A stretch of DNA of 64,000 nucleotides from Chlorokybus atmophyticus (lineage: Eukaryota; Plantae; Mesostigma and Chlorokybus algae). The stretch is from the NCBI GenBank assembly GCA_009103225.1, contig RHPI01003041.1, forward strand, positions 401,001 through 465,000. The letters are read 5' to 3'. Below are positions 3,163 to 64,000 of the stretch, piece after piece. The notes below the pieces were generated by a model that searched no databases, was not told where the DNA came from, and saw nothing but the letters and a program-made list of their open reading frames with translations. Both the position numbers and the translations under genes were made by a program. The number at the start of each line of letters is the position of its first letter. Position 1 is the first letter of the stretch.

Positions 3163-3258
<96 letters not shown>

Positions 3259-10069: not shown

Positions 10070-13000
10070 CTAGTGTACAAGCGCTGGCTGCTTGACATCA
10101 TTGGCATGAGAGCTATTGACTGGAGAATCCACCTGCGACGCACAATAATAATCAATGTTGGTGTTGACATCACTGTTGCGAGATGGCACCTAACATGCAT
10201 GTGTGGAACTTACTGAGGCATGCTTGAAGAGCTCATCCAACACCTCAGACAACGTAGGGTGCGCGTGCACATTGAACTTGATGTCCTGAGAGAACAATGC
10301 AGGGCAAATTAGCGGTTGCATCTGCACCGCCGCGCATCATTTGCAACCAAATGACAGCATACTCAGCGCACCTCAACAGTTTGACCTGTGGCGATCGCAT
10401 TTGATGCCTCATGAATCAGATCCGCCGCATGCATACCCTGCAGGCAGTCGTAAATCAGAGTAGAGCGCATCTGTTGGTCAACACCCACAACCATCAAGCC
10501 TGACAACACCACTCTGTGCAAGAACAACGATGAAGCCTAGGCTTTCTCGAACTGAGGGTGGACGGCTGAGTAATACTTACAATGATATGTACACCAAGGA
10601 TTTCGCCAGTGTCTCCGCGGTAGATCATCTGCGTGTCAACAGCGTCATGTACAGCAAAAGTGAACAGGAATGTCGCAGCTTGCATCATCACATGTGTGTT
10701 CGGTTGAAGTACATCAGTTGAAAACGAGAGATACCTTCGCCATGCCCTCTCCCTCATTCTCAGCAAGAGCCTTGGAGTTGGCTTTGAAGCTGGTCTTAGC
10801 CACCTTGATCTTGAAGCCCTCAGCCGCAGCCTTCTCCTCTGCTTGCGGCTGCAAGCACGCAACATGTTTCAACTGCGCCTTAGCCAAGTAACTGTAGATT
10901 ACTGTCGGTTGAGTGTATATACCTGTGTCAGCCCAGCAAAGCTGATTTCTGGATGCGTGAAGCATGCAGCGGGCACACTGAGGTGGTTCAGGAGGTTGTC
11001 ATTGCCGCAGACATTCTCAATGACTGCAGAGCCACCACAGTGAGCGTGTAACCAAAGATTGTCAAAGGCGTTGACACCCAAATTGTGTCGCTCAAGTGAA
11101 CGTAACGCGCAGACACAATATCACCCCTGGTCAGGCTCTTATGATCATCTGCATGAGTGCAAACCTCTGACAAGCTTATACCTCAGCAGCATCCCAGTCA
11201 TGCAGACTTAGCTTCCATTTCTAAACTACTGCAGACTCTCTGGCAAGTACACAAGGCACGCCATGCAAGGATGTGTGCCATGGCAACAAGTACTCACCTG
11301 ATATGCCTTGTGCGCTGGCAGCGTGCGCGAGCATCATCAGGCCATTGGCATCACCGATGCAATACAAGTGGGGCACCTAAACATGCACAACATTGTACCT
11401 CAGTTCTCAACGGATGCCATTTTAGCTGACGATGATCACACAACACTACTGCAAGCACTACGCTACTCACCGGCTTGCCCTCAGTGTTCAGCACTTGGAA
11501 CTTGTCATTGACAGGAACAAACCCTCTCCTATCCGTGTCAGCATCCACCTGCAACCATGCTTGTGACTACTGAAGCAAAGCTTAAGTACTGGAGTACTGA
11601 TTTGAGACCGCACAGCTTCTCTTGAGCCTACGACTACGGCCGCACTATCTCTCAGTAAGCCAAAGCCTGCTGCTGGTGCATCATCATCATTAACTGGACT
11701 TACCGTAATCAAATCAAGGCCCTTGGTATATGGCGCCCTTCCAGTTGCGATCAAAGCCGCATCCACCTGCATGTGGCTTAGTCATTGCAACCACTGCATG
11801 AGGCCTGTGCATGTCTCGCCATGCTTGACTTGAAAGCCAAACCAAGTTGACATACACACCTCTAACACGTCCTTTGGCTCTCGTGTCTTGAAGTCAACCA
11901 GCTCAATCCTGACAGGTCCTCCATTGACACCTGGAGTAATCTACAGTACAACATGCCGCATTAGACAGAGAGTGATGCGACAGACATGTTGCATCTTGCG
12001 AGTGCATGAGTTCTTGGAGTGCTCACCGTCTGTGCAAGCACGCCAGTGTGGTAGTCAATGTTGCGAGGCTGGATAAGGATACGTTGCGCCATGCGTGCAA
12101 TCTCCGGGTCAAAGCCAGGCATGAGGTTGTCCAATGCTTCAACAAAAGTAACCTGTTGCAAGGCAGCATAAATGCGCTTGCACAACAGCACACCCACCAT
12201 TTCGAACAAACGGAAGCATTCAGCTCAGCTTACATCACTGCCCAATGCTGTGTATACATCGCTGAACTCCAGGCCAATGTAGCCCGAACCCACAATGCAC
12301 ACCCAGTTGGGAACCCACTCCATCTTCAATGCGTGATCACTGGTGAACACTGTCTTGCCTGTTACAAGTTGCAATCGTTAAGTAGAGGTATCAATATGCT
12401 GCCAGTGTGTCGTGAGATGCTAGCGTAGTAACAGTCGGGGAACAGGCAGTTGCTGTGACTGACATGGCTGGATAACATGCCACACAATGACTGTGCACGC
12501 AGCCTCTACCATGGCAACCTAGCAGTGTCCATTGTGCAGCAATGCATAATGGAACTCACCATCAACGGTGATGCCCGGGGGAACGAAGGGTGTGGAACCA
12601 GTTGCGATTATTATATCCCTCGCAGAGATGCTCTTCTCTGGATAGGTCTTACCAAACCCAACAACTTGTGGACCCTGCAATTGGTTGGTAACAGACAGCT
12701 ATCAACAAGTAGAACCTAATAACAGTCTTGCAAAGGCTGCACGGTCGTGACTAAGGCAGCTACAGTTGCTGCCAATATGATACAGGATGCACATGCTGAC
12801 ATATGATGCAAGAAGAACACGCTTGCATCATACATACATAGCTTGTGCATGTAGAGAAAACGATGCCTACAGACACTACCTTCATATGCACTGAAGTTAC
12901 TGAAAGAGTTGAGGAGGCAATACCCCAAGCCATATGAGTGTTTGCAATGCAAGGCAGTGCAGCACTCCGACCAAAGTACTGCATGTCGCATTGGCTTCTG

Positions 13001-14074
13001 TAGATGGCAATAAGCTGCTAACTCTTGTATATCCAATTTATTGCTCTCAACAGGGCATGACTCCTAGACATGATCTCAGAAAGCGCAAAAGCTTCAACTA
13101 ATGGACTGGGTTACCTGAATGGAACCAACACCCTCCAAGATATCCACACCCAACGCCTTCATGGAGTTCGCCAGGTTGCCCTGAACCTTTTTCGCTAGCA
13201 GGTTGGCGTGGTCTGCAATCCCTTGCCTGTCGTAACTGACACTGCCGACCTGTTGCACAAAAGTACTTGCGTGTTGAGCAATCTAGCGAGCAAGACAGCT
13301 GCAAGATACTTCTTGCATGTTCAATTGCATATGTGTATGTCCACTACCGACCAAGCTAGCGACAGATGTTGTTGCCCTGCTTGACAGAATACTTGGAGGA
13401 TGCACTCTATTGAGGGTTGAACAAGTGTAGTCTGTTCTTGTCTACAGCAAGTTGCAAGCATGAATGATTCGAATAGGAGAATGAAGCCATGCACAAACCT
13501 GAATTCCAAATTGCTTCAGGTGAGAAGCATTTCTCAGCTCTCTCAACCTTCCAGAGGCTGCCAGCAGCGCCTTGGAAGGCACGCAACCCCTGTTGACGCA
13601 GGTCCCGCCAATATCTTTGGACTCAATGATGGCAGTTTTGAGGCCCTGACAACAGCAACTGTGTGTGAGCGTTGTGTGTGCAAGTATGCTTGTGCATTGG
13701 CAATGCTGTGCAAAGCAGAAGCACATACACACAACCCAAACCTTAGAGACAGCGTGCAAAGCGGCTCCATGTCCTCCGACCCCAGCGCCGATGATGACGA
13801 CGTCATAATCGAATTGAGAAGTTGCTGAAACTGTTAGTGAGCGTCTTTGTGTGTTGACAGCTGGACCCGAGCTGTGAAGCTTAATCCGCCTCAGAGCAGC
13901 CGCATTGCCGCCCAGGCCCTGCGCTGAGCAGCTGCCAGGCTGCGACGACTGCAGCCTCCGCAGACCAGAGTAGCCCGCCTGGGGAGACGGTCGTCGGGGA
14001 GCTGCGGAAGGACCGGACGAAGGCGAGCAGCTCGACACCACCGTTCCGGACACCGCCACCGCCGCCGTCGCCAT
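10070..14074 (-). CDS. LPD1: Plastid dihydrolipoamide dehydrogenase (E3), multi-exon, with transit peptide
   Basis: ATG at 14074 followed by a Ser/Ala/Arg-rich presequence. Motifs: [18 protein letters not shown] (FAD), [16 protein letters not shown] (redox disulfide), [10 protein letters not shown] (NAD), [79 protein letters not shown]. Short last exon [20 protein letters not shown] with stop at 10070-10072. Confidence 0.95.
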
Positions 14075-15599
14075 GCTGAATGCCACCAACACGACCGCCC
14101 CACCCCTAGTTACGTATCTCAGAGAGTGAGAGACGCGTGACGTAACGGAGCTGCTGTAAAGAGCGTATCCCTGGCAGGCGAATTTCTTGCCGTGTGTTTT
14201 CTAGTGGATTACGCACCGTAACTTACGGTGCCGAGCAAAGCTGGTGGCAGGCTGGCTCGAACGCCGCTCCGCCGCTCACACCCGCCCGGCTTTTCCACGT
14301 CAGCCTGGGCGGGTGATGAGTCTCCCTGCCAATACAAACTCATGTGCCATACATCATGGACCATAATTCATTGCCCAGTCCGCATGCACGCGTATCTCGT
14401 TACCGGCACATGATATGGTCCCAATGGACTATAGACCAGTGGTTTACCAATGACACTGGTACACCGGATGAAAGTGGAACGAGTGGTGCGGCTGATTGGG
14501 CGGGGCGGCAATAGGGCACACGCAAACCTCCACCCCCCAAGGGCATCACATACGGCACCCGCGACTGCCGGGCTGCGCGGCCCGCATGCCGCTCATTGGC
14601 TAAGCGGCGTTTATCATCTATCAACCGTTCGATCTGTCAAATATAGATTTTGATCGTTCAAAGCACATCCCCATTTCATGCAATTGCTCAGAATATATGC
14701 AAATGAATATCAATAATGAGCACAATGTGCACGATGCACATGCCGGCATATTGTTGCATGTGGCTCACATAATTTTGAGATGTAACACACTTATTTAAGG
14801 TGGCAAAACAGTATCTTTGATGTGTTGCAATATGAAGCACATATGTTGCGATATGGTGCAATATGGCTAGCAACCTGCAGTTAAGTGTTACAAAACTTAG
14901 TGTTCAACGTAACGTTCACGCCACGGTACCTGCTAAGATATTCAGTAATGAATGCCAAGGTTACAACCATCAAAATAATGCTAACTTGAATTCTCTTAAC
15001 ATTAAGATTCAACTAAACGAAAAATTGCATCGTTAGGCCACCATTTGGTTACGCATGAATTTGATCAAATGGGATCGCTGCGGTGACAACAGCCGTCGCT
15101 GTAAAAGGCAGCGAATACGCCAATCATTGCAGAGATGCATAAAAGATGCTGAAAACTATCTCAGCGGCAACTGCTTACCCAAGGCGACCTAACATCGCTA
15201 GGGATTCGGTGCAATTGCAGCACAGTTAATGGTTAAAATGGCCGCGTTTTTTGCGATACGAGGACGGGGCAGGCCTCATACCCCAAAGACATGCCGCCAC
15301 TACTCACCCTTATTCTAACTAATTCACTCTACCATTTCACGCTAATTGATTACACGCTATAGTTACTGCGTCATTAAACATGGTCAACAACCGAACCAAA
15401 TGTTTGCATACAATGGTGTTACCATACCCGTTCGCGGTGCCCCCCTTTCATAGAATTATAGGATTATAACATGGTAACCCCTCAAATTTATTATGGACGG
15501 GAGGTTTATTGTATCGGGGGGCGCTCTATTAGGAAGGGGGCAATGAATCACATTAAACTTACGCTGATTAACCGTATTTAATTGCATTCATCACAAGTG

Positions 15600-15667
15600 A
15601 ATGTCACAAAATTTGCCACATAATCGTGACACTCAAGTCACGATTATGTGACAAATATTATCACATT
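15600..15667. repeat. Foldback inverted repeat (31-bp arms, 6-nt loop)
   Basis: Arm 15600-15630 matches the reverse complement of 15637-15667 at 27/31 positions; the inner 14 bp (CACATAATCGTGAC) are perfect; loop ACTCAA. Confidence 0.8.
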
Positions 15668-16816
15668 GAGTGTACCTTATTGTAATGAATGTGCCATCTT
15701 ATAGACGGGGAGCACTATATACGAGAAGGGGCATGGTGTAGCCTAACAGCGTGCCACCCTTTAACATTCAGGGGGATAATTGTAACAATAAGGGGCGTTA
15801 GAACGCGTAGGTACGATATGTGTGCTAAAGTGTCTCTTAGGTACTTTTATATGTACATGACCAAGTGATTAATTGACACTGTAGCATAGCATACAAACCA
15901 GCATGCAACGCACGGATCAAGTGGCGCAACTACACAAGCAAGTTAGCGTTAAAGAAGTGCACAAGCATACACACGGGCAATAAGCAAGTAGTCGGCAAGT
16001 ATTACATCACACAAGAGCATTGTCTTTCTGCATTAGGCAAGCAGGCAGCAACAATTAGCAACAGACAAGTACAGTAGCTCAACCAACAAGGATGTGCTGA
16101 ACCCCGCAATAGCACCTCTATAACCAACGGCAACAGCAATATCAGAGGCTCACGTAAACACAATTTGTACTATCTCGTACATAGACAAGCGCCAACAGTG
16201 AGCACGTTGCGATGGGGCAACCTTTCATTATGGTCTCCTCATCCTTAACTTCCCCAAATTAAGGTTAAGGTTTACACGCCCGCCTTACGACTCACAACGG
16301 CCAGCAAAGCGATGTAAATTCAGGATTGCCTGTGAATACCCACAATTGGGGTGGTTGAGGAACACCATGACCAAGCAACGTGTTGGCGTTAATAGCATGG
16401 CAGGTGTAGTCACGCAGCATGACCAAACATGTCAACAAACATAGGGACACTTGCGTGCTCCCCTCATGGTTTTGTAGCTTGCATGATAGCATGATACCTA
16501 AACATGCGCCCATATTACAGTGTATGAGCTGTGAACATGTGGAAGTGGGGGGGAGGTACGGTTTTTTTTGTTCATTGCCTGATTGTTCATTATCAAATTC
16601 GCATGTAGTTGTTAACATGGATACGTGCATACAACTTGTGAATGTTTTAAAATAATATAACATGTAAGTCGTATCAATTTATACTCATCCACCACTGGGT
16701 TGTGCACAGTTGCTAGCAGCACATATATCTAGCAACTTGCAATGTTGTGAGAGGAAACCATGCCGACCATCACAGTTTGCATGGCAGCATATCATCCCCC
16801 CCTGGACTTACCGTAA

Positions 16817-16923
16817 NNNNNNNNNNNNNNNNNNNNNNNNNNNNNNNNNNNNNNNNNNNNNNNNNNNNNNNNNNNNNNNNNNNNNNNNNNNNNNNNNNNN
16901 NNNNNNNNNNNNNNNNNNNNNNN
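16817..16923. other. Assembly gap (107 N)
   Basis: Run of N in the sequence. Confidence 1.
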
Positions 16924-17564
16924 GGTATATGGATATGCATTAATGTAATGCGCCAAACAAAAGGCTCTATACCGAGGGATTCATACGAGAGAAATGCGTT
17001 AAATGTGCTGAACTGCTTGAGCACTTATGCTTATGTATTGAACGCATCGGCATTGCAAGCGCTTTTCACCACACTTGCTGAAGTCTTCTCATACTACCTC
17101 TCGGTAGACACCTCTCCAAAATCGTCCCCAACACAGAAGTGGGGAGGGGGAAGGACGATTCTATGGTTTGGGAGAACAAGCTGTCGAGGAGATATCAGCA
17201 TCATCGTGCAATGTATGTGAGCAAGATCGTCGTCCATGTGACAAAGCTAATGGACACTCGGTGTTCTTGACGCAATGACGTCACTGGCCACCGAACAACC
17301 AGCCAATGACCTACCATACATCAGCATACACCAGTTCCATTGGCAAGTTCACTGTCTTGTCAACAGTTCTGTTCGTGCGTGTGGTTGCCTTGAGCATGTA
17401 GCCATGGATAGCTTTCCATCATGCTACCAACTTAGTTGGCATGTCCGATGTGTGTACTGATACAATGTGCATTAAGAATGCTCATCTTACTAGTGCTAAC
17501 TACTTTATGAGCTACATACTTGGTCAGTTGCAAGCACCCGCTACGGGACGGGCTACTACTATAG

Positions 17565-22452
<4,888 letters not shown>

Positions 22453-26000: not shown

Positions 26001-28209
26001 TTGGACGCACAGCACTGAAACTGTTGTCTGCAGTTGGGGAGATCGAAGCTTGCCAAGCTTCCACCCAGGTCAACAGTTCATGCCGACAGCGCTGGAGTTG
26101 GCTCAATCACAGACAGAACCACCCCACCTGCTGAGTGAGTCAGAACTCATTGGCTTGATGGACACCAACGGCATCGGCACAGATGCCACAATGCATGACC
26201 ACATCAAGACCATAACAAAGCGGTATGACACATTACCTTGGCGTGCATGGGCATGCATCCCTTGCGAGCATTTCTGTGCGCGCGTGTGTGTCTGTGCTGC
26301 TTAACTTACAAGTCTGTGCATTGCGCTTCAAAGAAACTATGCAATCAAGAACAACAGGCAACAATTTACGCCTACTCCACTTGGTGAAGCCTTGGTGCTG
26401 GGCTACGATGCTATGGGTTACGACTTATGGAAACCAGCGTTGCGGGCTGCCATGGAGGCAGACATGAAGCGCGTTGGGGTTGGTTCCAAGACCAAGCAGG
26501 CAGCTGTGCTTGAGTGCCTGACGATAATGAAGCAGACCTTCTCTCAAGCCAATGCGCAGAAAGACAAACTGCTAGAGGCCATGACGCAGTTCTTTGCACC
26601 AGCAGCAGGGAATCATCATGCAAACAACAGCGGCCACAATGGTGCTCAGGGCGGATCAGCCGGGGAGTTTGTGCGAGCATGCCCAATGTGCAATTGCAAC
26701 TTCCTTCTCCGCCAGCGTCCCGAAAATGGCAAGTTCTTCATAGGCTGCTCAGGCTTCCCGCAGTGCAGAAACGTCCTTTGGCTGCCCACTGCAACGCTCG
26801 AAACGCAGGTACTAGTACGCAAGAAACCTGATCATGCATGGGTTTCCTTGCCTGTTCTCATGCTGTGTTGTTCTTGTGCGTTGCGGTAGGTAACAACGGA
26901 GACTTGCGCAATGTGCCAACCAGCGCCTGTGTACATGGTGCGGTTCAAATTCAATCGAGTGAGCTTGCCGCTCAGCATGGGCCATATGGTCAATTATGTT
27001 GGGTGTGTCGGCTGCGATGGTCCGCTGCTTGACTTGTTTGAGATGTGCAACTATGGCGGCCCTGGTGGAGGAGGTGGCGGTGGCGGTGGTGGCGGCCCAG
27101 GTTTGTGTTAGCTGACCTCTGGGTGCCTATGATTTGGTTGGCAATGGAGCACATGTACGTTCAAAAATGCATACATGCACGCGTGACGCACACATGCAGG
27201 CACGCACAGAACAAAACACACTCACACATATGCCCACGTATGCTTGAACCCGCAGCACGTGTGCATGCACACACGCGCCCTGAAAGCGAACCTGATCTGT
27301 CATGCAGGCAATGGTGGAGGGGGCAACAGTCGACCGCCAGGAGGCTCCGCGCCATTTGCGGTTCCCACTCAGAACGCGGCTGCACGGGCCTCTGCTAGCA
27401 CCAACCACCATAGACCTGCTCCTGCACCTGCACCCTCAACAACTGCACCATCCCAGGCTCGGCCTGCAGCCCGCGCGCCACCCTTCAACCCTTACCAGCC
27501 CGCACCCAATCACGGCTTTCAACCCGCCAGCAACCTCAACATGTTCCCGGGAGGTACACTGCGTGTAATGACTGCACAAGTACACATGTAATTGGGCTGG
27601 CTTGCACACTCACACGCATACGTACTCGGCAGGTGGGTACCAGGCAGCAGCAGATGGTAGCGGCTTCCCCAGCAGCTCTCATCATCCAAGGTCTGGGCCT
27701 GGTTCAGCGAGGAGAGGCGGTCAACAAGAGACTGGCAACAGAGGCACGGCTCGCCGTGGCGCGCAGCCCACAGGACACAGTGCGATCCCGCACTGCAACT
27801 GCGGCACACCTGCAACAGAACGCACTGCCAACACAGCCACCAACCCCAACCGAGTTTTCTACACGTGCAACGTGTGCCACTATTTCCAGTGGAGAGACGA
27901 ACTTGGCAATGCAGGTGTGTGTATGTGTATGCTCTTCATGCTTGCTCGGAAGGGGGGGTCAACTGCTTGTGGGCTGAAGTGTATGCATGCATGCTTCCAG
28001 CCAGGAGCAACGCGGCAACGGGTGCAAGCAGAAATCGCAGCGGCAGCCAAAGCGCGGCACGCGGAGCGCGAGGTAGAGGGCGGGGAAGAGCGGGGAAGGC
28101 GAGGGGAGGAGCTGGTCGCGCCTCGGCGTCCGCATCATCGGGCTGCTTCAAGTGTGGGGAGCAGGGCCATTTCGCCAGTGGTTGTCCCAATCAGCACAAC
28201 TTTATGTGA
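23093..28209 (+). CDS. TOP3A: DNA topoisomerase III alpha, multi-exon
   Basis: [17 protein letters not shown] (Toprim), [79 protein letters not shown] (catalytic Tyr), [44 protein letters not shown]4 zinc ribbon [15 protein letters not shown] finger [22 protein letters not shown] knuckle [14 protein letters not shown]; stop ends at 28209. Confidence 0.96.
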
Positions 28210-29104
28210 GCAAACGAGGCACACAATACCAACATGCACCATGCAGAAACTGCAGTCACTCATCCATACTGTATAGTACTAAAAGCCCGTTGATCACATC
28301 TGTAGCAATTGAAGCTGAATGCACATGCCTGACAGCATGCGCCGAATGGATTATCCACTCTCATATTTTGATGTTAACCTTCAACCATGCTGTTCCGGGA
28401 GATGCGTTGCATGCAGCCAAGCCTGGCAGGCAGGGTGAGGGCGCCAAGGTCTGCGTGCTGAAGCATGTGCATGTGTGCATAGGAATGCACTTCCAAGGTA
28501 GGTCCTGGTAAACATACTCTGCATGGTGCAGCAACCCCATGTGTTGAGCACAGCCATGTTGATGTGTGGACATTGTCAGGTCCATGTCATCAACGGAACA
28601 TGCAGGTGCGTTGCTAGGGTTACCTCAATGTTGGAAATGTGCTTACAATTACTTGTCACTATGACAAAGCTTTTGTAAGTGCAATGTCTGAGTAACCAAC
28701 CACATTTTGCGCGGATACCACCATCCAGAGTACAGCATTATTGCAATGGTACAGCTGGCAGAACCAAGTGTACTGTCAATGAGGTTTGACAACTGTGGTG
28801 CAGCAGAGTAGGTACAGCCTGCACCTACAGAACAATACTGGCTACTGCACTTCGCGCAAAGTTGGCCTGCTGCTTGGTGGTTGGTAAGTGTCGTGGCAGC
28901 TTCAATGTTCATCAAAAGGGCGTTGCTCTCTGTCCAGAAGATGGACAAGCTGTGATTGAAAGATGCACAAAGCAGTCAAGCACATCTGATGACGATGTTG
29001 GGCGGAGTTGACATATTGCTGCTGAGTGTTACTACCCATAATATCCGTGCGCAATGCAGTTGATGCGCTCAACTACATTGGGCGTGGCCGGTGATTTGGA
29101 CATA

Positions 29105-33438: not shown

Positions 33439-35134
33439 GATGACGACGAAGACAACGGAAGCCTTTACGCCGTGTTCACCCTTTTCACCTCCACGCCGCC
33501 GCCACCCACCCCGACAGCCACATGCACAACGACAAGCTTAAAACGCCGTCTATGCCGTGAGCTATGCTCACTGAGCTCTCTTACGGCCGGCAAGTGTTGG
33601 CAAGTCGCCGAAGGCAATCGGCAGCCTCCCTGCAGTGGCTGCCCACTATTGTGCAGACAGTATCGGTCGTGAGCGAGGCTAGCAGCCGGATTCTGTCGTG
33701 ATACCTTCCGGCAGGCAGCGGTTGGCATCGCCAGTCAGTAGGTCAAAAAGTCCGGGTGGACTTGTGGCTTGGCTGCTGCGGGAAGAGCGGCGGACAAAAA
33801 GTTCCCGGGGGATCTTTTTCTCCGGCCGGAATCTCTTTCTTCCAGCGGAATCTTCCCTGTTGACAGGCGAACCTGGCTGGCAGTTGCATCTCTGTCGGTG
33901 TGGCCGCGGGAGACTGGGGGTTGCAAAATTTCCCGCGGACACTGGCGTGCGTTACGCGCTGGTGAATCACACCCGATGTGACGCATGCAGCGACATGACA
34001 TGTGCGTCGCAGTCGTGAGTCTGAGTGCAAGGCGTGACGCACAGTTTGCCCCTTGTACAGTTTAGTGAACAAACAACTTGACAACGCTAACTGCCTAGGG
34101 GCCCTCAGTCTGACCCCAGCCCTTGCACTGAAGGCCCATGGCAAGTCACGGTCACGAGCGATCAAGCAACAAGTGAGTATGGTTGAACATTTGATGGCAT
34201 TATCGGATAGGCATTTAAAAGATATTAATGGCTTTATAATAATAGGTATGGTTGTTGTGTGTACGAACGGAGTGGAGATTGCATTGGCATGTATAATGCA
34301 GACATATGTATCAATGGCACGATGCCATAGAGCAACATCATTGCACGGTCATAAATAGCGCACGTGAAACAGCATAGCAAGCAATGAATAGTCCATTGCA
34401 TTCACTCCCACAGTTGTCAGCATAAAGCATACCATAGTATGTGTTCAGCAGTGCTACATATACATACTCCTACTTAGCACCCAACCCTTCCATGCCACAC
34501 ACAAATGCACTTTAAGCTATCCACAATTGTGCATTTGCATAAAACTTAACGAATGTTGCATCTGCGGGGGAAGGCAACACCCTTTGGAAAACTTGGTTAA
34601 AGTGGTAAGTCAGGCTGTGAGGATGTCGCTTCCAAGGCTGAATCATGAGCATGTGTAGTGGTTATGAGGTGTGCTCACGCACAGGTTGCCCTTGAGCCCA
34701 TGCGGCCTTGAGCATAATAAACCGCACAAAACATGAGTAAGGTAGCACAGAGCTGCTCATTGCTGATATTACGTAGCTTGGTTATGTCACATCGATGTGA
34801 CACTATGTGTGAGCAGTGGTCACACATGCACGGAGCCGCTATAAGGCAGATCCAAATGCAAGATAATATCTCTTATTAGTCAATGTATCTACTAAGAAGA
34901 ACGCAAGGAGCCTTACCATTGATGCGCTTGGTTGGAGTCCTTGGGCAGCAAGGGGGAGTACATATATAAGGGTGTTGCCAACAGTGTGGTGGGCAACGGA
35001 GCCCGAGTGGAGCTACTCTACTCACGTGTGTAGGATGTAGTTGCTGATACTTGGTATATGCTGTTGTACTTTCTTGAAGCCTGCTGCACACCCGCCGGGA
35101 TAGGTATGTGTGTGGCGGATGACTGTACTCTTCT

Positions 35135-35759
35135 GTGCGAGGTATTGTTGCTGTTAATATTAAAACAAGTGTTGTTGTTTTTTCTCAAGTTGAAGTCTGC
35201 TCTACACCCGCCGGGACAGGCTATTATGGTAAGTGTGCAGTAGGTGTCACACATAAGGTGTGCGAGGTATTGTTGCTGTTAATATTAAAACAAGTGTTGT
35301 TGTTTTTTCTCAAGTTGAAGTCTGCTCTACACCCGCCGGGACAGGCTATTATGGTAAGTGTGCAGTAGGTGTCACACATAAGGTGTGCGAGGTATTGTTG
35401 CTGTTAATATTAAAACAAGTGTTGTTGTTTTTTCTCAAGTTGAAGTCTGCTCTACACCCGCCGGGACAGGCTATTATGGTAAGTGTGCAGTAGGTGTCAC
35501 ACATAAGGTGTGCGAGGTATTGTTGCTGTTAATATTAAAACAAGTGTTGTTGTTTTTTCTCAAGTTGAAGTCTGCTCTACACCCGCCGGGACAGGCTATT
35601 ATGGTAAGTGTGCAGTAGGTGTCACACATAAGGTGTGCGAGGTATTGTTGCTGTTAATATTAAAACAAGTGTTGTTGTTTTTTCTCAAGTTGAAGTCTGC
35701 TCTACACCCGCCGGGACAGGCTATTATGGTAAGTGTGCAGTAGGTGTCACACATAAGGT
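35135..35759. repeat. Tandem array of five apparently identical 125-bp units
   Basis: Unit GTGCGAGGTATTG...GTCACACATAAGGT starts at 35135, 35260, 35385, 35510 and 35635; a diverged partial copy (TTGAAGCCTGCTGCACACCCGCCGGGATAGG) lies at about 35074-35104. Confidence 0.95.
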
Positions 35760-36770
35760 AGGGGGAAAAGGCAGCCTCGCCAATTGTAGGGTTGGCGCTT
35801 GAAACCATGGTAGCCTTGTCGTTGTTGCTTTTTTTGGCCCTTGCTCCCGATGCCGATGTAACATGAGACTATCAGTAATAATCTTCGTTTGAATTGTACA
35901 TACGTTGTTGCTTTTGATGAGCGTAACGTTATCTGTTTGTTTTATATGTCTAGTTCAAGTGTTATTGACTGCAGTGGGCTTGTGGCATTGTATGCATGTA
36001 AAAAAACCTTTGGTTTGTGAGGCGCTCTCGTGCTCTCTGTTCTACCCTTCCTTCCAATGCTTGCTGCTCCCCCCCCCCCCCCCCCCCCCCCCNGTTGTCG
36101 GCTTCGGACGCGTCTCCAGAAAGACGCAATGGAGATTGAACGAAGTTGGCGAGCCTTGACAAGGGCTCCATGACGAGTTTTTTGCAGAGCAATGGAAAAA
36201 CCTTAACTTGGCTAACACGTGTATGGCCCTGCTTTAAATCAACCGTTATAAAGGATGAATTGCACGATCGTTTTTAAGGCAGAGTGTTTGAGCGGCAGAA
36301 GAAGATTGCTGATTTGTACAGGTTGAAAAAGAAAGGGCTAGTTGCAGAGTACCAAAAGGCTCGTGGTTTATGCAATACTGCGAGGGTTGCTTATTTTTCT
36401 TTTATCCTGTCGTCAATGACATTGTCGTTAGCTAATGCATGTGGGGCTTGTAATCGGGTGGAGGGGCTTACAGTAACCATTCACACAAGCTCCCCAGCCT
36501 TTGGGGGCTTTTATACAGGTTGTAACAACACCACCGTCGCCGGTGATGCCCCTTCAATCCTCTACCCCAACACCCACACCGCCTATGACAAGCCTTTCAA
36601 CGGCGTGGCCGCCACTGAGCAGAGAAGTGAAAGTCCCTCACATCAGTTTGATGTAACCTTTTATATAAAAAGTATATCAAATATATACCCCTCAATAATT
36701 AACTCACAACTAGACATCGACCCTACAGATAGGGTAGTAAGGAAATCTAGCGTGAGCCAATCACAGCTCA

Positions 36771-56559: not shown

Positions 56560-56610
56560 AGCCACCCCCCCTGAGATTCTGGGGTAGCCCTCTGCTCCAG
56601 AACTCAGTTC

Positions 56611-59600
56611 CTACCGACTGTGTGGGGGACCGTTGATGCGGCAGTCATCACACCAGTACTCCCACAAGGGTACTGCGTCCAGTGGAGGGTCAAGGGAGTA
56701 GCAGTGCATGCCTTGATTACAGCTATCGCATAACATCATCAATGGGTCGTCGTCGGCGCTGCCACACTTCTCGCATCGGGTGCTGCGCAGCGGACGCGGG
56801 TGCTGGATCTGGGCGAAGCCAGCAATGTAGGGGAGATGACAGGGCGCACAGTTGACCATGTTGTCCTTCATGCGCTCGCCTCGTTGTCCCAACAGGTCCA
56901 GTACCCCTGTGGGGTGCACCTTCAATACCTTGTAAACAGCACGCCCGACGGAGGTATCGAGGGTGTCGCGTGTGGACGCCATACGGTAGACGAAGTCTCC
57001 TGACTCGAAGCGGCGCTCCCGCTCCTTGTAGAAACCACTGCGCACACGCTCATAACGCAGCGTGTCGCGGTGCTGCGCGATGCGCAGGTTGTTGAAGGCC
57101 ATGGGGACTGTGTGTTCGAACAGCGCACTGCGCACTGTCAGATCATACAACATCTCGTCGGGGTTATCGAGATTGTCCACCACTCTGTCGACCTCCTGCT
57201 GTGCGCGGAAAGGGAGCAGTGGCTGCCTTCCGAACAGTAGATAGTATGGGCTGTACTCTCGCAGGGCTGCCTGCTTGGACAGCCGGTAGCCCATTGCTAC
57301 CCATGGGAGGTGATCATCCCAGGTATTCTTCTCGTAGGCAAGGACGTACTTGCGCAGTGCCTTCTTGATGGTCTGCACGGTACGTTCGGCGAGGCCGTCG
57401 GCCTGCGGGTGGTCGCGTGAGGTGCGACGGTGGTCGATGAAGCATCTGTCGATAAGCTTGTCGAAGGCTCCTCTGAACTCCGTACCCTGGTCGGTGATGA
57501 CTTCAGCGCAGCTGCCGAAGCGTCCGAGTACATGGGAGAGGAAAGCCTGGGCTACTCCCTCACTGCTCTTGTCGGGCAGGGGCACCAGCTCCACCCACTT
57601 GGAGAAGTGCTCGATCATGACGAGGATGTAGCGGTTGCCTCGCGCTGAGGGCGCTAGGTCTCCGAGGATGTCCAGTCCCCAGCGGTAGAACAACCCGGAA
57701 ATGGGAAGGGGATGCAAGGTGGCATTGCGCGTGTTGAGGCTGGCGCGAACCATGTCACACTGCTGACAGTTGCTGACGAACTCCCGCACCTGTCTGTGCA
57801 CCCCATACCACCAGTACTGGGTCCTGACCAGGCTGACCGTGCGCTTGACACCGAAGTGCCCGAGCTCGGTGTGAAGGGAGGAGATGATGCCTTCACGTGC
57901 AGCTGGTGTGGGGACCTCCTGATCTGCATCTTGTATCCGTCGATACAGCCTGTCGTTGGCCCAGCGGTAACGCTGAGTGCGTTGCCGGACGCGGTCCTTC
58001 TCGCGTGCGCTCATGCCTGCTGGAAGTTGTCCAGTCTGAAGCAGTGCGAGCGATGGCTCGTCCAGCCAGATGTCTTGTCGTGTGTCGGTGGGTGCCAGCT
58101 CCTCATCATCCACCTCAGGGTCGGCAGCGATTGCTTCTTCTGATAAAGGATCGGTGGTGGTGATGGCGGGCTCGAGAGCGGGCATGTCCCCGTCTGCTGC
58201 TGCCTCAGCGATCTGAGTCCTGCGTCCTGAGCGTAGCGCAGCGACAGCGAACATGGTGGCCACACCTGAAGGTGCAGCTGTAGGACCCAACTCATGTCGG
58301 GCGCCTGTGGCGTCGTTGGTGCTGAGGTGGGGGTTACGGCTGAGGCCATCCGCATCCTGGTTGGCAAGGCCTGCGCGGTGTTCCACCTCGAAGTCGTACT
58401 CCTGGAGCAGCAGCGCCCATCGTGCTAACTTTCCTGTCAAGTGCTGGTTGTTCATTAACCACTTGAGGGGTTGATGGTCAGTGACCAGTTGGAACTGCCG
58501 TCCAAACAGGAAGGGTCGGAAGAAGGAGATGGCCCACACTGCGGCGAGACACTCCCCTTCGTAGCTGCTGTAGTTGGCCTCAGCACTGTTGTTGCTGCGG
58601 CTGGCGTACGACACTACGCGCTCCTTCTTGTTGTTGTCGTGCTGTACGAGCACGGCCCCCATGCCGAGCTTGCTCCAGTCCGTGTGCAGGATGAACGACC
58701 TGGTGTAGTCAGGGCGTTGCAGATTGGGAGCTGTGGTGAGGCGGAGCTTCAGCTCCTGAAAGGCCTCCTGTTGTGCCTCCTTCCACAAGAACTCGGTGTC
58801 CTTCTTCAGTAGTTCGTTGAGAGGCCTTGCGATCTTGGCAAAGTCTTTGACAAACCGTCGGTAATAGTTGGCAAGGCCGAGGAAGGCCCGCAGTCGCGTG
58901 AGGTCTGTGGGGGCAGGGATAGCCACCAGTGCTTCCACTTTGGCCTGCTGTACGTACACACCATGGGGCACAATCATATGTCCTAGGTAGGGTACCTTGT
59001 GGGTGAAGAAGGTGCACTTGTCAGGGTGCACCGTCATCCCGACTTCCTTCAGCCTCTGTAGCACCTCTTCGATGTGCTGGAGATGCTCCTCATTGCTGTG
59101 ACTGAAGATGAGGATGTCGTCGATGTAGCAGCGCGCGAAGTCCAACCCCTTGAGGGCTTTGTCCATGACGCGCTGGAACTTGGCCGGAGCGTTCTTCAGT
59201 CCGAAGGGCATGACCTTCCACTGGTACAGCTGCCGGTTTCCCCAGAAGGAAGTCTTGTGCTTGTCCTCCTCCTTGATGGCGATCTGGTTGTACCCTTGGC
59301 GCATATCCAGGATACTATAGACCGTGCAGTCTCCTACATCGTCAAAGATGCCTTCTGCGGTAGGCATCGGATACCTGTCCTGCTTGGTCTTGTTGTTGAG
59401 GGGGCGATAGTCGCCACACATGCGCCGGTCTGTCCAGTTGCCTGCTGAATCTTTCTTCAGGGGCATGACGGTCGCGGCCGCAAAGTCCGATGTGGACTCC
59501 TCGATCAGGCCTGCATCTAGCAGCGCCTTGCACCTCTGTTCCACCAAGTCTTCTTCTAGCTTGGAGAGGCGGTACTGTCTTCTGAACACCGGTTCGGTGT

Positions 59601-62600
59601 CCACTAGTTCAATGTCCATCTGATATGCTAAGCATATGCCCAGCTCCTTCACACTGAAACTGAATTGGCTCCTCCACTTGTTGAGGAGAGCCTCGAGTTG
59701 CTCTCGAGTCTGGCCTGTGGCCAGCGGTCCAATGGCGTGGGACCATGAGGTAGCGTTGGCGACCACTGGAATGTCTTCCACAGTAACTGCTGCCTGCTCC
59801 TCCATGTGGGCGGTCTCGAGGGCGGTGTGTGCTGCTTTGGTCTCTGAAAAGCGAGCAATCCACCCCCCAGCCAGGTGTTCGAGCTCCTGGAAGGACACAT
59901 GGCGGTCCTGGAGAGCAAAGCACATTTCCAAGTACCACACCATGCTGTTCTGATCCATGGCGCGCCCCAACAACTGACATTGTTGACTGGTTGTCAGCGT
60001 GGAGCCTGTGATGCTGCTTGGAAAGAATCCCATAGCACGCTCGCGCTCGCGGGCATTGGGTTCTTCCAGCTGTCCAGTGTTGGAGTCCAACACCATGCCG
60101 TCGCCTGCATTGCGGAACGCGTAGGAGCCTGGATAGGATACAAGTGTGGGTAGCGCGCGGCGCGGCTGACCAGGCTGGTTGCACTGGTAGAAGTGGTGGT
60201 GGTCAAGGCGTGTGACTGGTTGCGCTGTGCGTCCAGGGTCCAGGATGTCATCGACGACGAGATTTCGTGGCCGATTGCTGTATAGGTACTCTGCCAGAAA
60301 CAGGTCTTCCACAATGGCCAGGTTGGTCCACTTGGCGCGGACGCGGTGTGCGCGAGATCCATGACGCGCGGCGTTGATTTTGAGAGGATGCCCCAGCAAG
60401 GAGCATACTTGCCGATAGGCCTTGGCGACGTGATGCCGCTTGTCATCCTCGGAGTGCACATTCTCGATGATGTACCCCAAGGGTCTAGCGATCTGACTGG
60501 TCTGTAGGAGTTTGATGACTCTCATTAGCTCCCAGAACAGCTGTGAGCGAGGATCAGAGAGCCCTTGGCCTCTGCCTGCCCTGGAGTGCCCTTGACACTC
60601 CCATCCTGCTATCAGCAGGTCAATGTTGCCGACTGCCTGCAGGTGATCCTTGGTAATCCAGCGGATGTCCTGCGGCAGAGCCTTCTGGCTCCCTTGCAGT
60701 GCCGACAGCGGTAGCTGCTGCGGGTAGCGCTGGTGCAGCTGTCGTAAATGATGGCTCAGAGCCTCCTGTGCATGAGGGTCAGGGTCACAGTAGAGGTACT
60801 TGGTGACTGTTGTTCCTGTGTTGAGGACAGCCGCAAGCCCACTGCCTATGCCTCCGAACAGCTCCAGCACGGTGATGCCTTGTTGTCGGCGGAACATGTG
60901 GAACTCCACAACTCCCGTAGCTATGTGGTACTGCTCCTGCACTGTAGCCTGGTCTTTGTAGGCAGGGAAGTGTGCAGTGAGCTGAGGCCTGGTCAGCAGC
61001 ATGTGTGCTGCTACTTGTGCGCTCCAGCGACGCTCGGATGGCTCCTGAAAGGCCACTTCTTTGGTGACAGTCTCCTGAGACTCATCGTACGGTGTAGGGG
61101 AGTCCTCTTCAGCGTTTAGGCTCGGGCTCGAGCTCGTTGCAGTTGTCCTCGGCTGCGTTCGGGCACGAGGCACACGTGAGCTTTTTGTAAGACTGTAGGT
61201 GGCTGCTGCAGCCGATCTTCGTTGCGAGCGGTCCTTGGCCACCAGTTCGAGAGGTAGGAATCCCTGCTCCTCTCCATCGTCCTCATCCCAATGTGGTCGA
61301 AACCATGCCTGCTCAGTCCAGCAGTCCAGCCCCATGCCGACAGGGAAGTTGCAGTCCTGTCCCAACAGTAGGTCAAAGGACCCGGCATCGGTGACCACAC
61401 ACCTTTGTACAATCTCGGTGCTGTGGGAAGGGTTTAGTCCGGTGAGGCGGATGCTCACAGCCTGCTTGGTAAGGCCGAGTACCTTGTCGCGGTTGCCGGT
61501 TGCGGTGTCCAGCTGGTAGGGACAGGGAAGCAGCTCAGCGCTGGTGATGCCGAGATCTCGTGCGAGGTAGCGCCCAATGATGACAGGCTGTGCTCCAGTG
61601 TCCAGCATCACGCGTTTGGGTGCCCGCCCATTGACGGTCACGTGCTTGCCTTGGTTGGCGATCATGGCTGCATTGGCGTTGATGCGCAGCCTCTTGAAGC
61701 GACGGAACCTCTTGCGTGGAGAGACTGTTGCTTTACTCTCATCTGCGGGGCCTGACCGTAGGGCAGCCAGGGCTCCTCTGCCTGATGGATCTTGTGGGCC
61801 TCCTTGTCCTCGGCTTTGTCCAAACCGTCCTTGTCGCGGTTGCTGGTACACGCGTGGTGGCCTAGGCACTGGAGGTGCTGCTGCAACCTGTCCAAGTGGA
61901 GGTGCAGGAGGGTTGACCCTCTGTGCAGCTGTTGTCATGCCAGGAGGAGTGGCCAGTGGCTGTGGCGGGAACCCTGGAGGACCTGGTGTTTGCGGGACTG
62001 CCTCTCGTGCAGCCTGCTCCTCTGCATAGGTCCATCGCACAGCATGGGCTGCCTCTCTGACTAGTGTACCTTCCCATGTCGCCGTCGCATTGTTGTCCGC
62101 ATCTATATAGCGATGGTTCTGAGGCATGGGCTGCAGGTACACTGCGCGTAGGAGCCGCGCTCTCATGTCGTGGGTGATGGTGGGCACCCTGAGGATCCCT
62201 GCCATGTAAGCATCCCATCTGCCGTTGACCACTCCCACTTCCAGCACTGTTATTGCTCGTGTGCGTACAGTGAGGCGGGTCTCTGGCTGTTGGACATGCT
62301 GCTCGTAAGCAGCGGCGATGCGCCTGCGCTGACGTCCTGCCTCCACTCCTGGCAAACTCAGTATAGCCTCCAGAGCTCCCTCCAGAGTGTCAGTGGCGGC
62401 GGAAGCCACTTCATCATAGGCTTGCCGTATGGAGCGAAGGAATGCGTCCACCCACGCTATTCTGGCGCCGAAAGCGAACAACGGGACTGCGGGATGGTTG
62501 GTGACCAGCCACGTCACTAACCGTGCGCGTGCCGCGTTGCCATTGTCTCGCATCCCAAGCATCTGCCGAAGTCCGATGCCTTCTTGCCGATGCAGCATGG

Positions 62601-63960
62601 TTGCTTGTCGCAACAGAGCAGTGCGTAGTTGTTGCTCTCCAACCAGTCCTGCTCCATCTCTTTGTGTACACCCTTGTGGTGTAAGGTAGCCCCTCCCTGG
62701 CTCCCTTTGGTCCTCAGGTAGATCCTCCACCAGCGCAGGCAGCAGCGGGGCGATCACCCCCCTGGTTTGTTGAGCCAACGCCCTCGCTTGGTCAGAGTTG
62801 GTCTCGACGAAGAGCGGAGTGGTGCTGGAGGATGGACCAGCAGTTGGTGACTGAGGTATTGGTGCACGTGTAGCTTCAAGAGCTTGTTCACGTGCAGCAA
62901 TGGCGGCAGCTTGATCCTGTCGCCAATGATATGCTTGTTCCAGTGCGTGGTAGCGCTGATGAAGACGAGCGGTTGTAGGAGGTCCGAGTGCTTCATCAGT
63001 GCCCAAAGGCAGGTCGGCTGCGTCGGCGATTCGCTGCTGGATGGCGTCTCGGCGGTCCCGATACGTGTCCAACGGGCTGGGTTCAAAGGTGGTGGTTGGC
63101 ATGCGTGCAGGCTGGCGCGGGGCGGTCTGCATGTTGTTGTGCAACGCCCAGAACAGCTGCAGAGCCAACTCCAACACTACAGGTGGGCTGTAGCTCATCA
63201 AGAACACCCTGTCACGCATCGGAGGTGCAGTGCCAGCAAGGATCTCATCTTCTAACTGGTGTTGAGTGAGTGCTGGAAGGGTGTGAACCTCTGGCAGCGG
63301 GAAGACGCGATCATCGCGGGCGACACGCGTGGTGCGCTCCCCCCCCCGACCGAAGGCGATGGTAGTGGGGTCTGCTCCGCGCAGGATGGTTTCCCATGCT
63401 CGTTCAGCTTGCTGACCAGTTGGGACAGCCTGAGTGACGTCGAGAGCGGGCAGACTGGCTGCGCGCATCGCTGCAGAGACAGCGGGCTCGACGATGGCCA
63501 TTGTGGCAGTTGCGACGGTATCGGTCAGTGGTGCGAGAGTTGTCTCAACGCCCCCGGACAGAGGCGCTGCTGCAGTGGGAAGTGCACCGCCCACTGGCGC
63601 AGATTCGGTAGTGATGGCGGCTGCTGCCAGTGTGCTCACCAGCGTCCGCGTCACGGTGCCCACCGGTGTACCAGGTCGTGGTGCAACTGGAGTGGATAAT
63701 GCTGACGTTGATGGAGTCGACGTTGTAGCCGGTGTGGCTGTTGCTGCGGAGGCAGCACCACTGGTGGCTTCGGAGGAGGTGCCTGCTGATGTTGTTGCAG
63801 CTTCCCCTCGTGCTCGTCGCGATGGTTGCACGCGGGACGGAGTGTTCCTGTCTCTCTCGCGTTTTGCAGCCATCAGCGCCCATCGGGCCATGTAGCAGGC
63901 GCAGTAGTCCTGCTCCTTGTCTTCCTCCAAGCGTGCCATGCGTGCCATTAGGGCTGCCAT
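56611..63960 (-). CDS. Ty3/Gypsy Gag-Pol polyprotein with internal C5 cytosine DNA methyltransferase and C-terminal PHD finger (2449 aa, frame open to the window edge)
   Basis: Protease VMLDTGA (~61600); C5-MTase ~59900-60880 with ELFGGIG, AGWECQGHS, YIIENV, RAHRVRAKWTNL, RERERAMGF, LLGRAMD; RT RMCGDYRPLN, VMPFGLKNAP, CYIDD (59116-59127); RNase H LHTDWS..GAVL, EGECLA, TDHQPL; integrase H..GH..C..C with D(GLD)-D(TDQG)-E(AER); PHD 56641-56775. Confidence 0.95.
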   Translation of the reverse strand: MAALMARMARLEEDKEQDYCACYMARWALMAAKRERDRNTPSRVQPSRRARGEAATTSAGTSSEATSGAASAATATPATTSTPSTSALSTPVAPRPGTPVGTVTRTLVSTLAAAAITTESAPVGGALPTAAAPLSGGVETTLAPLTDTVATATMAIVEPAVSAAMRAASLPALDVTQAVPTGQQAERAWETILRGADPTTIAFGRGGERTTRVARDDRVFPLPEVHTLPALTQHQLEDEILAGTAPPMRDRVFLMSYSPPVVLELALQLFWALHNNMQTAPRQPARMPTTTFEPSPLDTYRDRRDAIQQRIADAADLPLGTDEALGPPTTARLHQRYHALEQAYHWRQDQAAAIAAREQALEATRAPIPQSPTAGPSSSTTPLFVETNSDQARALAQQTRGVIAPLLPALVEDLPEDQREPGRGYLTPQGCTQRDGAGLVGEQQLRTALLRQATMLHRQEGIGLRQMLGMRDNGNAARARLVTWLVTNHPAVPLFAFGARIAWVDAFLRSIRQAYDEVASAATDTLEGALEAILSLPGVEAGRQRRRIAAAYEQHVQQPETRLTVRTRAITVLEVGVVNGRWDAYMAGILRVPTITHDMRARLLRAVYLQPMPQNHRYIDADNNATATWEGTLVREAAHAVRWTYAEEQAAREAVPQTPGPPGFPPQPLATPPGMTTAAQRVNPPAPPLGQVAAAPPVPRPPRVYQQPRQGRFGQSRGQGGPQDPSGRGALAALRSGPADESKATVSPRKRFRRFKRLRINANAAMIANQGKHVTVNGRAPKRVMLDTGAQPVIIGRYLARDLGITSAELLPCPYQLDTATGNRDKVLGLTKQAVSIRLTGLNPSHSTEIVQRCVVTDAGSFDLLLGQDCNFPVGMGLDCWTEQAWFRPHWDEDDGEEQGFLPLELVAKDRSQRRSAAAATYSLTKSSRVPRARTQPRTTATSSSPSLNAEEDSPTPYDESQETVTKEVAFQEPSERRWSAQVAAHMLLTRPQLTAHFPAYKDQATVQEQYHIATGVVEFHMFRRQQGITVLELFGGIGSGLAAVLNTGTTVTKYLYCDPDPHAQEALSHHLRQLHQRYPQQLPLSALQGSQKALPQDIRWITKDHLQAVGNIDLLIAGWECQGHSRAGRGQGLSDPRSQLFWELMRVIKLLQTSQIARPLGYIIENVHSEDDKRHHVAKAYRQVCSLLGHPLKINAARHGSRAHRVRAKWTNLAIVEDLFLAEYLYSNRPRNLVVDDILDPGRTAQPVTRLDHHHFYQCNQPGQPRRALPTLVSYPGSYAFRNAGDGMVLDSNTGQLEEPNARERERAMGFFPSSITGSTLTTSQQCQLLGRAMDQNSMVWYLEMCFALQDRHVSFQELEHLAGGWIARFSETKAAHTALETAHMEEQAAVTVEDIPVVANATSWSHAIGPLATGQTREQLEALLNKWRSQFSFSVKELGICLAYQMDIELVDTEPVFRRQYRLSKLEEDLVEQRCKALLDAGLIEESTSDFAAATVMPLKKDSAGNWTDRRMCGDYRPLNNKTKQDRYPMPTAEGIFDDVGDCTVYSILDMRQGYNQIAIKEEDKHKTSFWGNRQLYQWKVMPFGLKNAPAKFQRVMDKALKGLDFARCYIDDILIFSHSNEEHLQHIEEVLQRLKEVGMTVHPDKCTFFTHKVPYLGHMIVPHGVYVQQAKVEALVAIPAPTDLTRLRAFLGLANYYRRFVKDFAKIARPLNELLKKDTEFLWKEAQQEAFQELKLRLTTAPNLQRPDYTRSFILHTDWSKLGMGAVLVQHDNNKKERVVSYASRSNNSAEANYSSYEGECLAAVWAISFFRPFLFGRQFQLVTDHQPLKWLMNNQHLTGKLARWALLLQEYDFEVEHRAGLANQDADGLSRNPHLSTNDATGARHELGPTAAPSGVATMFAVAALRSGRRTQIAEAAADGDMPALEPAITTTDPLSEEAIAADPEVDDEELAPTDTRQDIWLDEPSLALLQTGQLPAGMSAREKDRVRQRTQRYRWANDRLYRRIQDADQEVPTPAAREGIISSLHTELGHFGVKRTVSLVRTQYWWYGVHRQVREFVSNCQQCDMVRASLNTRNATLHPLPISGLFYRWGLDILGDLAPSARGNRYILVMIEHFSKWVELVPLPDKSSEGVAQAFLSHVLGRFGSCAEVITDQGTEFRGAFDKLIDRCFIDHRRTSRDHPQADGLAERTVQTIKKALRKYVLAYEKNTWDDHLPWVAMGYRLSKQAALREYSPYYLLFGRQPLLPFRAQQEVDRVVDNLDNPDEMLYDLTVRSALFEHTVPMAFNNLRIAQHRDTLRYERVRSGFYKERERRFESGDFVYRMASTRDTLDTSVGRAVYKVLKVHPTGVLDLLGQRGERMKDNMVNCAPCHLPYIAGFAQIQHPRPLRSTRCEKCGSADDDPLMMLCDSCNQGMHCYSLDPPLDAVPLWEYWCDDCRINGPPHSR

Positions 63961-64000
63961 ATGGTCATCAGCTGGTGGGTTGGCTGAAGCCTTGGCTGAA

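Follow-up and report, generated by a model that had tools for sequence, protein, structure and literature searches.

We have analysed a 64-kb stretch of the Chlorokybus atmophyticus genome assembly (GCA_009103225.1, contig RHPI01003041.1, positions 401,001 to 465,000), referred to in its entirety as the window, which contains a retrotransposon whose polyprotein includes a predicted C5 cytosine DNA methyltransferase (DNMT). The element is represented by a single uninterrupted open reading frame (ORF) on the minus strand at 56611-63960, comprising 2449 codons with 0 internal stops and 0 frameshifts, and this is the sole ORF exceeding 250 aa in the window. The 7.35-kb frame contains no N, all of the N gaps in the window being located outside the element. 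GC content is 59% in the element compared with about 50% in its flanks. A Pfam scan of the gag-pol-type polyprotein indicated the order gag-like region, protease (PR), DNMT, reverse transcriptase (RT), RNase H (RH), integrase (IN) and PHD finger, all encoded on the minus strand. An Ala/Arg/Thr/Pro-rich gag-like N-terminal region (61681-63960, aa 1-760), called by position only and lacking both a Pfam match and a CCHC knuckle, is followed by an aspartic protease (61354-61641, aa 774-869) with DTGA at 61591-61602. The DNMT domain (59899-60888, aa about 1025-1354) precedes an RVT_1 reverse transcriptase (58972-59433, aa 1510-1663) with YIDD at 59116-59127 and an RNase H (58396-58785, aa 1726-1855, the Pfam RT_RNaseH match covering 1751-1855). 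Integrase is represented by an Integrase_H2C2 zinc-binding domain (57742-57906, aa 2019-2073) and an rve catalytic core (57409-57684, aa 2093-2184), and a PHD-like zinc finger falling under the Pfam threshold is located at the C-terminus (56641-56775, aa 2396-2440). Thus, the Pfam positions give the PR-RT-RNase H-IN order with a DDE integrase by which Ty3/Gypsy elements are recognised.

No stop codon interrupts the frame before the window ends at 64000. The 40 nt between the first ATG and the edge (63961-64000, minus strand) comprise 13 codons, all of them sense codons, so that the true N-terminus of the polyprotein may be located beyond the window, as may the complete 5′ end of the element with its 5′ untranslated region and any 5′ repeat. 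We consider it very likely that the window contains an intact copy of a Ty3/Gypsy-type long terminal repeat (LTR) retrotransposon whose 5′ end is cut by the window edge.

The methyltransferase was originally proposed from inspection of the DNA letters alone, an analysis referred to below as the sequence-only reading, and all of the motifs quoted in it are found where it had placed them and in canonical order. Motif I, ELFGGIG, is encoded at 60844-60864 (aa 1033-1039), motif IV, GWECQGHS, at 60583-60606 (aa 1119-1126) with the catalytic residue, Cys1122, at 60595-60597, motif VI, ENV, at 60457-60465 (aa 1166-1168), motif VIII, RVRAKWTN, at 60322-60345 (aa 1206-1213), motif IX, RERERAMGF, at 60025-60051 (aa 1304-1312) and motif X, LLGRAMD, at 59953-59973 (aa 1330-1336). 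The order I, IV, VI, VIII, IX, X is canonical and non-permuted, the circular permutation that is a trait of plant DRM enzymes being absent, and the motif set, order and position are far above chance expectation. The single ORF and the Pfam positions further confirm that the domain is lesion-free and encoded within Pol, flanked by PR and RT and sharing their frame, as had been proposed.

Assignment of the domain to a class did not depend on the motifs alone. The Pfam DNA_methylase model (PF00145), named as a check in the sequence-only reading, exceeds its curated cut-off of 22 bits, scoring 39.9 bits when the polyprotein is scanned and 44.5 bits with the domain alone. The best stretch is aa 1097-1176 and the model aligns around motifs IV-VI only; the whole domain was therefore investigated by other methods as a 346-aa segment (59881-60918). 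A phmmer search against all PDB sequences returned DNMT3A, 3C and 3B first (E about 7e-8), above M.HaeIII, M.HhaI, DNMT2 and DRM2. A family profile built on alignment A1, in which the segment is aligned with 34 short relatives, matched DNMT3A in PDB with an E value of 2.7e-27 in three stretches spanning motif I, motifs IV-VIII and motifs IX-X, followed by DNMT3C/3B, plant DRM (1e-15 to 1e-12), M.HhaI (1e-9) and DNMT2 (1e-4); DNMT1, chromomethylase (CMT) and DNMT5 were absent at E<=1e-3 in this search. The AlphaFold2 model generated from the A1 alignment has a mean predicted local distance difference test score (pLDDT) of 94.2 and a predicted template modelling score of 0.92, with 306 of the 346 residues at a pLDDT of at least 90. 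When this model was compared with PDB using Foldseek, the top 50 matches were all DNMT3A/3B/3C catalytic domains, with E values down to 1.4e-19 and target-normalised TM scores of 0.80-0.84 at about 20% identity.

Combined, the profile and fold rankings indicate a catalytic domain that is complete and non-permuted and that is predicted to be of the eukaryotic DNMT3 type. Pfam, profile and fold matches thus agree with the original proposal of a retrotransposon-encoded C5 cytosine methyltransferase, and identity as a Gypsy element carrying a DNMT3-type methyltransferase is highly probable. PWWP and ADD, the accessory domains of cellular DNMT3, have no Pfam match anywhere in the polyprotein, and consequently only the catalytic module of DNMT3 has been captured, without its regulatory domains. 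Two other origins were considered and rejected. A bacterial restriction-modification type origin was ruled out by the profile and fold ranking favouring DNMT3, and for a viral origin, a scan of IMG/VR gave only generic phage C5-methylases with 24-31% identity over ~200 N-terminal residues.

Motif IV differs from expectation in one residue. To our knowledge, Pro precedes the catalytic Cys almost universally in C5 methyltransferases. The sequence-only reading was correct with respect to the location of motif IV and its catalytic Cys, but the canonical Pro-Cys dipeptide is not present, the window copy reading Glu-Cys at the position that phmmer aligns to the Pro-Cys of DNMT3A. Conservation was assessed in 192 relatives covering the full domain, of which 49% have E and 44% have P directly before the Cys, both states occurring in both of the Pol architectures described below, A and B. 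Because Glu is present in approximately half of the relatives and across both architectures, Glu-Cys is a recurrent family state and not a lesion. In the same 192 relatives the nucleophilic Cys and the Glu of ENV are each conserved at 100% and the Asn of ENV at 96%, both Arg residues of the motif VIII RxR at 99/99%, the E-R-E..G residues of motif IX at 98/95/99/99% and the G..D residues of motif X at 99/99%. The catalytic residues have remained fixed throughout a very broad radiation, which supports a genuine enzymatic function in the life cycle of the element; conservation by itself does not reveal what that function is.

Conservation of the methyltransferase is comparable to that of the other Pol domains. 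Identity between the window element and 16 full-length type-A relatives is 31% in PR, 41% in the DNMT, 43% in the IN zinc domain, 52% in RT, 54% in the IN core and 57% in RNase H. As the DNMT value lies between those of PR and RT, the methyltransferase shows the degree of conservation of a functional Pol domain. Only one copy is present in the window and the ratio of nonsynonymous to synonymous substitution (dN/dS) was therefore determined on relatives, using the closest pair for which DNA was available, L005 and L006, which originate from two different metagenomes and are 93% identical in protein sequence. dN/dS is 0.095 in the DNMT (333 codons, dS 0.18), 0.076 in PR and 0.06 in RT-RH-IN, with values of 0.20 in the gag-like region and 0.44-0.50 in the linkers. 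Thus, the domain is under purifying selection in the nearest sublineage. The dN/dS check proposed in the sequence-only reading thus gave constraint on the DNMT of relatives, the measured pair being L005/L006 and not the window lineage. The value agrees with the purifying selection, Ka/Ks<0.2, reported for the Gypsy-Dnmt3 elements of the charophyte Klebsormidium nitens, from which elements of this type were first published in 2018 (de Mendoza 2018, PMC5890265).

The C-terminal PHD finger was detected with lower certainty. In the window copy it scores 21.4 bits against a Pfam cut-off of 24, compared with 40-45 bits in four tested relatives. The finger is common to 80 relatives, with which the window copy agrees in 7 of 8 zinc-ligand columns, the remaining column departing from a residue present in 99% of them. 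The description of the element as a self-contained epigenetic reader/writer system is therefore fair as a label for domain content but weak in this copy, given the 21.4-bit score, the divergent ligand column and the distance of the finger from the DNMT. Chromoviruses carry a chromodomain at the integrase C-terminus, a position at which the window polyprotein, in which no Chromo match is found, has the PHD-like finger instead. About 1050 residues, including RT, RNase H and IN, intervene between finger and DNMT. On account of this distance and of the location at the integrase C-terminus, as with chromodomains, the PHD finger is by analogy more plausibly an integration-targeting module than a partner of the DNMT.

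The exact polyprotein is absent from databases by exact look-up, and tblastn of the polyprotein finds only itself within the 64-kb window. The methyltransferase belongs to a large group. An exhaustive HMMER search of 1.84 billion cluster representatives yielded 2641 matches at E<=1e-3, of which 256 reach E<=1e-30, and nearly all of the best 150 matches span the whole methyltransferase domain. The closest relative in a collection of 15 billion proteins has about 50%, and at most 51%, identity. Relatives with organism names are from Closterium spp. (30-41%) and Haematococcus lacustris (38-39%), all other matches being metagenome contigs; no match named as Klebsormidium was returned by three word-indexed protein searches which together covered candidate lengths of 190-4285 aa. 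One match, P0212, a 455-aa 'DNA cytosine methyltransferase' on a 2.4-kb contig of a metagenome-assembled genome assigned to Candidatus Obscuribacterales, has 48% identity to the window domain and is most likely a mis-binned algal retrotransposon fragment.

Two architectures were distinguished when pieces of the window domains were mapped by BLASTP onto 265 relatives. Type A, PR-DNMT-RT-RH-IN(-PHD), is observed in 56 proteins, including the window element and those of Closterium, and type B, RT-RH-DNMT-IN-PHD, in 102 proteins plus 29 probable members, including Haematococcus and most of the metagenome matches. Both domain orders were confirmed by Pfam coordinates in four representatives. Mean DNMT identity is 44% within A and 43% within B, decreasing to 36% between them. 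When the DNMT segments were grouped by average linkage, without a root, those of types A and B formed separate clusters with no exception. A parallel decrease is seen in RT, which is 52% identical to that of the window element in type A and 41% in type B. The searches returned no cellular algal DNMT3 that could serve as an outgroup, and the unrooted clustering is compatible both with one capture followed by relocation and with two separate captures.

It is very probable that the window element belongs to an old, diverse green-algal family of DNMT3-carrying Gypsy elements, of which the published prototype is KnitGypsy-Dnmt3 from K. nitens. A broader, joint reading, which is tentative and on balance doubtful, is that Gypsy-Dnmt3 constitutes an ancient, very diverse radiation in streptophytes and chlorophytes, occupying two slots in Pol with DNMT clusters that follow the slot, the window element being a deep branch. 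The same tentative reading would include a sublineage in which a single conserved in-frame stop leaves the DNMT joined to Gag-PR, and an integrase PHD finger in most members. In the searchable literature we found no description of a two-slot Gypsy-Dnmt3 radiation, of the Gag-side stop or of the pairing with an integrase PHD. If true, such a radiation would mean that selection has repeatedly, and over long periods, favoured a de novo methyltransferase carried by a retrotransposon in combination with a chromatin reader.

The Gag-side stop was observed in five related lineages (L003, L005, L006 and two more contigs), in which an in-frame division of the polyprotein yields a gag-PR-DNMT ORF of 1427-1451 aa and an RT-RH-IN-PHD ORF of about 1040 aa. 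In L003 (1055-8542), L005 (664-7785) and L006 (525-7985), the three loci for which DNA was available, the approximately 2400-2500 codons are each time interrupted by a single internal stop, and the first ORFs of the five split lineages are 68-93% identical to each other. Retention of the boundary across this range of protein identity suggests, from sequence comparison, a deliberate or programmed read-through rather than repeated damage, and such a boundary would yield DNMT in Gag-like amounts. The internal stop seen in these lineages is absent from the window element.

The ends of the element were investigated with respect to the repeat layout A-coding-B-A-B reported for K. nitens Gypsy-Dnmt3 (PMC5890265). 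Three repeat searches of rising sensitivity revealed no LTR or other repeat partner for the element in the window, no B..B pair is present within 6.6 kb downstream of the ORF, and the 5′ A would be located beyond the window. The only downstream repeats are a 45-nt pair of 89% identity, 91 nt apart (56066-56110/56157-56201), and an 81-nt pair of 93% identity (52181-52260/52627-52706), 3.9 kb away. The A-coding-B-A-B layout was found in L001 (metagenome, 9368-18354) and L004 (Closterium, 9441-17082) and is partly present in L006, as a downstream B..B pair at 8313-9156, which ties type A to the published KnitGypsy-Dnmt3. A G-rich polypurine tract (56562-56572, minus strand), about 40 nt past the stop codon of the window ORF, resembles the tract preceding the 3′ repeat of L001, and the 3′ terminal repeat presumably begins just downstream of it.

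The remainder of the window is a draft scaffold of eukaryotic nuclear DNA with intron-containing genes. Pfam matches identify host exons of an EXS-family (PHO1/XPR1-like) protein at 5556-7137 (plus strand), of a Pyr_redox_2 oxidoreductase at 13442-14092 (minus strand) and of a Top3-like gene with Top1-type and GRF zinc ribbons at 26392-28276 (plus strand); Rfam and tRNA scans of the window found nothing. N content consists of 95 consecutive C with a single N directly after them (3164-3259), a 107-N gap (16817-16923) and a single N at 36093, and a further single N (20146) directly precedes the first copy of a 223-nt perfect direct repeat (20147-20369 and 26310-26532). LTRs of another element were considered as an explanation for this repeat and rejected, since it is gap-adjacent and reads as a topoisomerase III-like exon; it is probably a gap-adjacent assembly duplicate. 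A tandem array at 35009-35884 contains five 100% identical copies of a 125-nt unit flanked by degenerate copies. CpG observed/expected (o/e) is 0.63-0.74 and TpG/CpA o/e 1.4-1.65 over almost the whole window, CpG o/e reaching 0.91 only at 36-42 kb, and the element, with a CpG o/e of 0.74, is like its flanks. This CpG deficit associated with TpG/CpA excess is the signature expected of a CG-methylating host.

The natural substrate of de novo DNMT3-type enzymes is unmethylated double-stranded DNA, which is also the product of reverse transcription. Translated as part of Pol, the DNMT domain would enter the virus-like particle together with RT and IN, and the protease may release it across the flanking linkers of about 140 aa and 125 aa. 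It could then act de novo on the newly synthesised double-stranded cDNA of the element, methylating it, probably in the CG context, prior to or at the time of integration, so that new copies would arrive already bearing the methylation mark of the host. The outcome might be either that the cDNA is hidden from surveillance or editing, or that the element's own expression is limited. Self-methylation of cDNA was the hypothesis of the 2018 authors, who also demonstrated de novo methylation of CG in yeast by SymbioDIRS-Dnmt3 domains (PMC5890265). We favour packaging and self-methylation of cDNA as the mechanism of the window element, with a confidence somewhat short of even.

Several points weigh against the interpretation of the window element given above. 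Motif IV carries Glu where a near-universal Pro precedes the catalytic Cys. LTRs and a primer binding site are not visible in the window, and the A-coding-B-A-B pattern of KnitGypsy-Dnmt3 that is present in L001, L004 and L006 has no counterpart downstream of the window ORF. The window contains one copy and no database relative exceeds 51% identity. K. nitens Gypsy-Dnmt3 produced no methylation in yeast, a result which its authors called inconclusive as human DNMT3B also failed (PMC5890265), and no Gypsy-Dnmt3 domain is known to be active. With respect to mechanism, packaging, proteolytic release, substrate and timing are all inferred.

The main rival to self-methylation of cDNA is an active methyltransferase acting on chromosomal DNA, either at the integration site, on resident copies to give a self-limiting copy number, or on the wider genome. 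The conservation evidence applies to this possibility equally, being substrate-neutral, and effects on the host genome and self-limitation were discussed as alternatives in the 2018 study (PMC5890265). The architecture can be read in both directions, as the DNMT of type B adjoins integrase and PHD, which would suit action at the target site, but that of the window element adjoins PR and RT and not IN. In addition, silent copies in K. nitens bear CHG/CHH marks of host silencing and the methylome is not unusual (PMC5890265). We regard a chromosomal target as unlikely, although it deserves serious consideration. Loss of catalysis, with the domain retained as a DNA-binding or structural Pol module, would account for the Glu preceding the catalytic Cys and for inactivity of the K. 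nitens domain in yeast (PMC5890265). The same yeast test also failed for a known enzyme, human DNMT3B, and the Cys, the ENV Glu, the motif VIII Arg residues and the motif IX/X residues are conserved at 98-100% in the 192 relatives, with E or P alike, a degree of conservation expected for catalysis and not for mere binding, which renders this alternative improbable.

C5 methyltransferase folds can switch to RNA substrates, and a DNMT2-like activity directed to the genomic RNA of the element or its tRNA primer was also considered. RNA methylation has been raised for the DNMT borne by long interspersed nuclear elements (LINEs) (PMC5890265). For the window domain this is very improbable, as the match to DNMT2 (E 1e-4) is far weaker than that to DNMT3 (E 3e-27) and the top fold matches are all DNA-bound DNMT3 structures. 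Finally, since the draft scaffold has N gaps and at least one duplication next to a gap, it could be argued that the fusion is not real and that a host DNMT3 gene or pseudogene lies beside retrotransposon fragments, or that the assembly is chimeric. The 7.35-kb frame, unbroken and without N, and the recurrence of the PR-DNMT-RT order in dozens of independent relatives, found in other genomes and in metagenomes, leave this explanation next to no probability.

Cytosine methylation is the main weapon of the host against transposons. A transposon with its own de novo methyltransferase therefore reverses the usual picture of host defence, and the question of why it is retained by such elements has stood since 2018. 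That the class was already known from dinoflagellates and a charophyte, as the sequence-only reading had stated, is borne out by the literature (PMC5890265). Beyond the 2018 paper, a full-text search on the family names found only passing mentions, worded as 'Gypsy-DNMT3 in streptophytes'.

Known systems resemble the window element to different degrees. EpiLTRs (bioRxiv 10.64898/2026.05.21.726589) are likewise Ty3/Gypsy-like and combine a cytosine DNMT with a chromatin-reader domain, but their DNMT is sister to DNMT4, is located at the 3′ end of pol and is accompanied by a DAM adenine methylase and a chromodomain, both of which the window element lacks. PHD fingers in green-algal Gypsy Pol have also been published, in Gypsy-7a_cRei of Chlamydomonas reinhardtii, which contains no DNMT and in which the PHD is drawn before the integrase and not at its C-terminus as in the window (PMC9940879). 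The best match in both sequence and fold is to mammalian DNMT3A/3B/3C (e.g. PDB 6w89, 8tci, 6u8p), which share the motif order, the catalytic Cys, ENV and RxR; identity is only ~20%, and the window domain is ~60 residues longer, has Glu-Cys, is without PWWP/ADD and is located inside a polyprotein.

Among retrotransposons, Symbiodinium contains both DIRS-borne Dnmt3 and LINE-borne DNMTs (PMC5890265). SymbioDIRS-Dnmt3, for which alone de novo methylation of CG has been demonstrated, is similar to the window element in having a Dnmt3-type domain within a retrotransposon Pol ORF, but its backbone is of the DIRS type and encodes a tyrosine recombinase, it is from a dinoflagellate and it was treated as an independent capture (PMC5890265), in contrast to the Gypsy backbone and DDE integrase observed here. 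The closest correspondence is with KnitGypsy-Dnmt3, described as intronless, non-rearranged Dnmt3 domains in an LTR Gypsy Pol ORF with key residues conserved (PMC5890265). The window element likewise has an intronless, non-rearranged Dnmt3 domain in frame in Gypsy Pol with the catalytic residues retained, in a green-lineage alga, the comparison being made with the published description. Motif X is poorly conserved in K. nitens (PMC5890265) whereas the window copy retains its G..D, as do 99% of relatives. Thus, the window element is a new, deeply divergent member of the element class published in 2018 and, being fully open, adds a deep branch to the Gypsy-Dnmt3 family.

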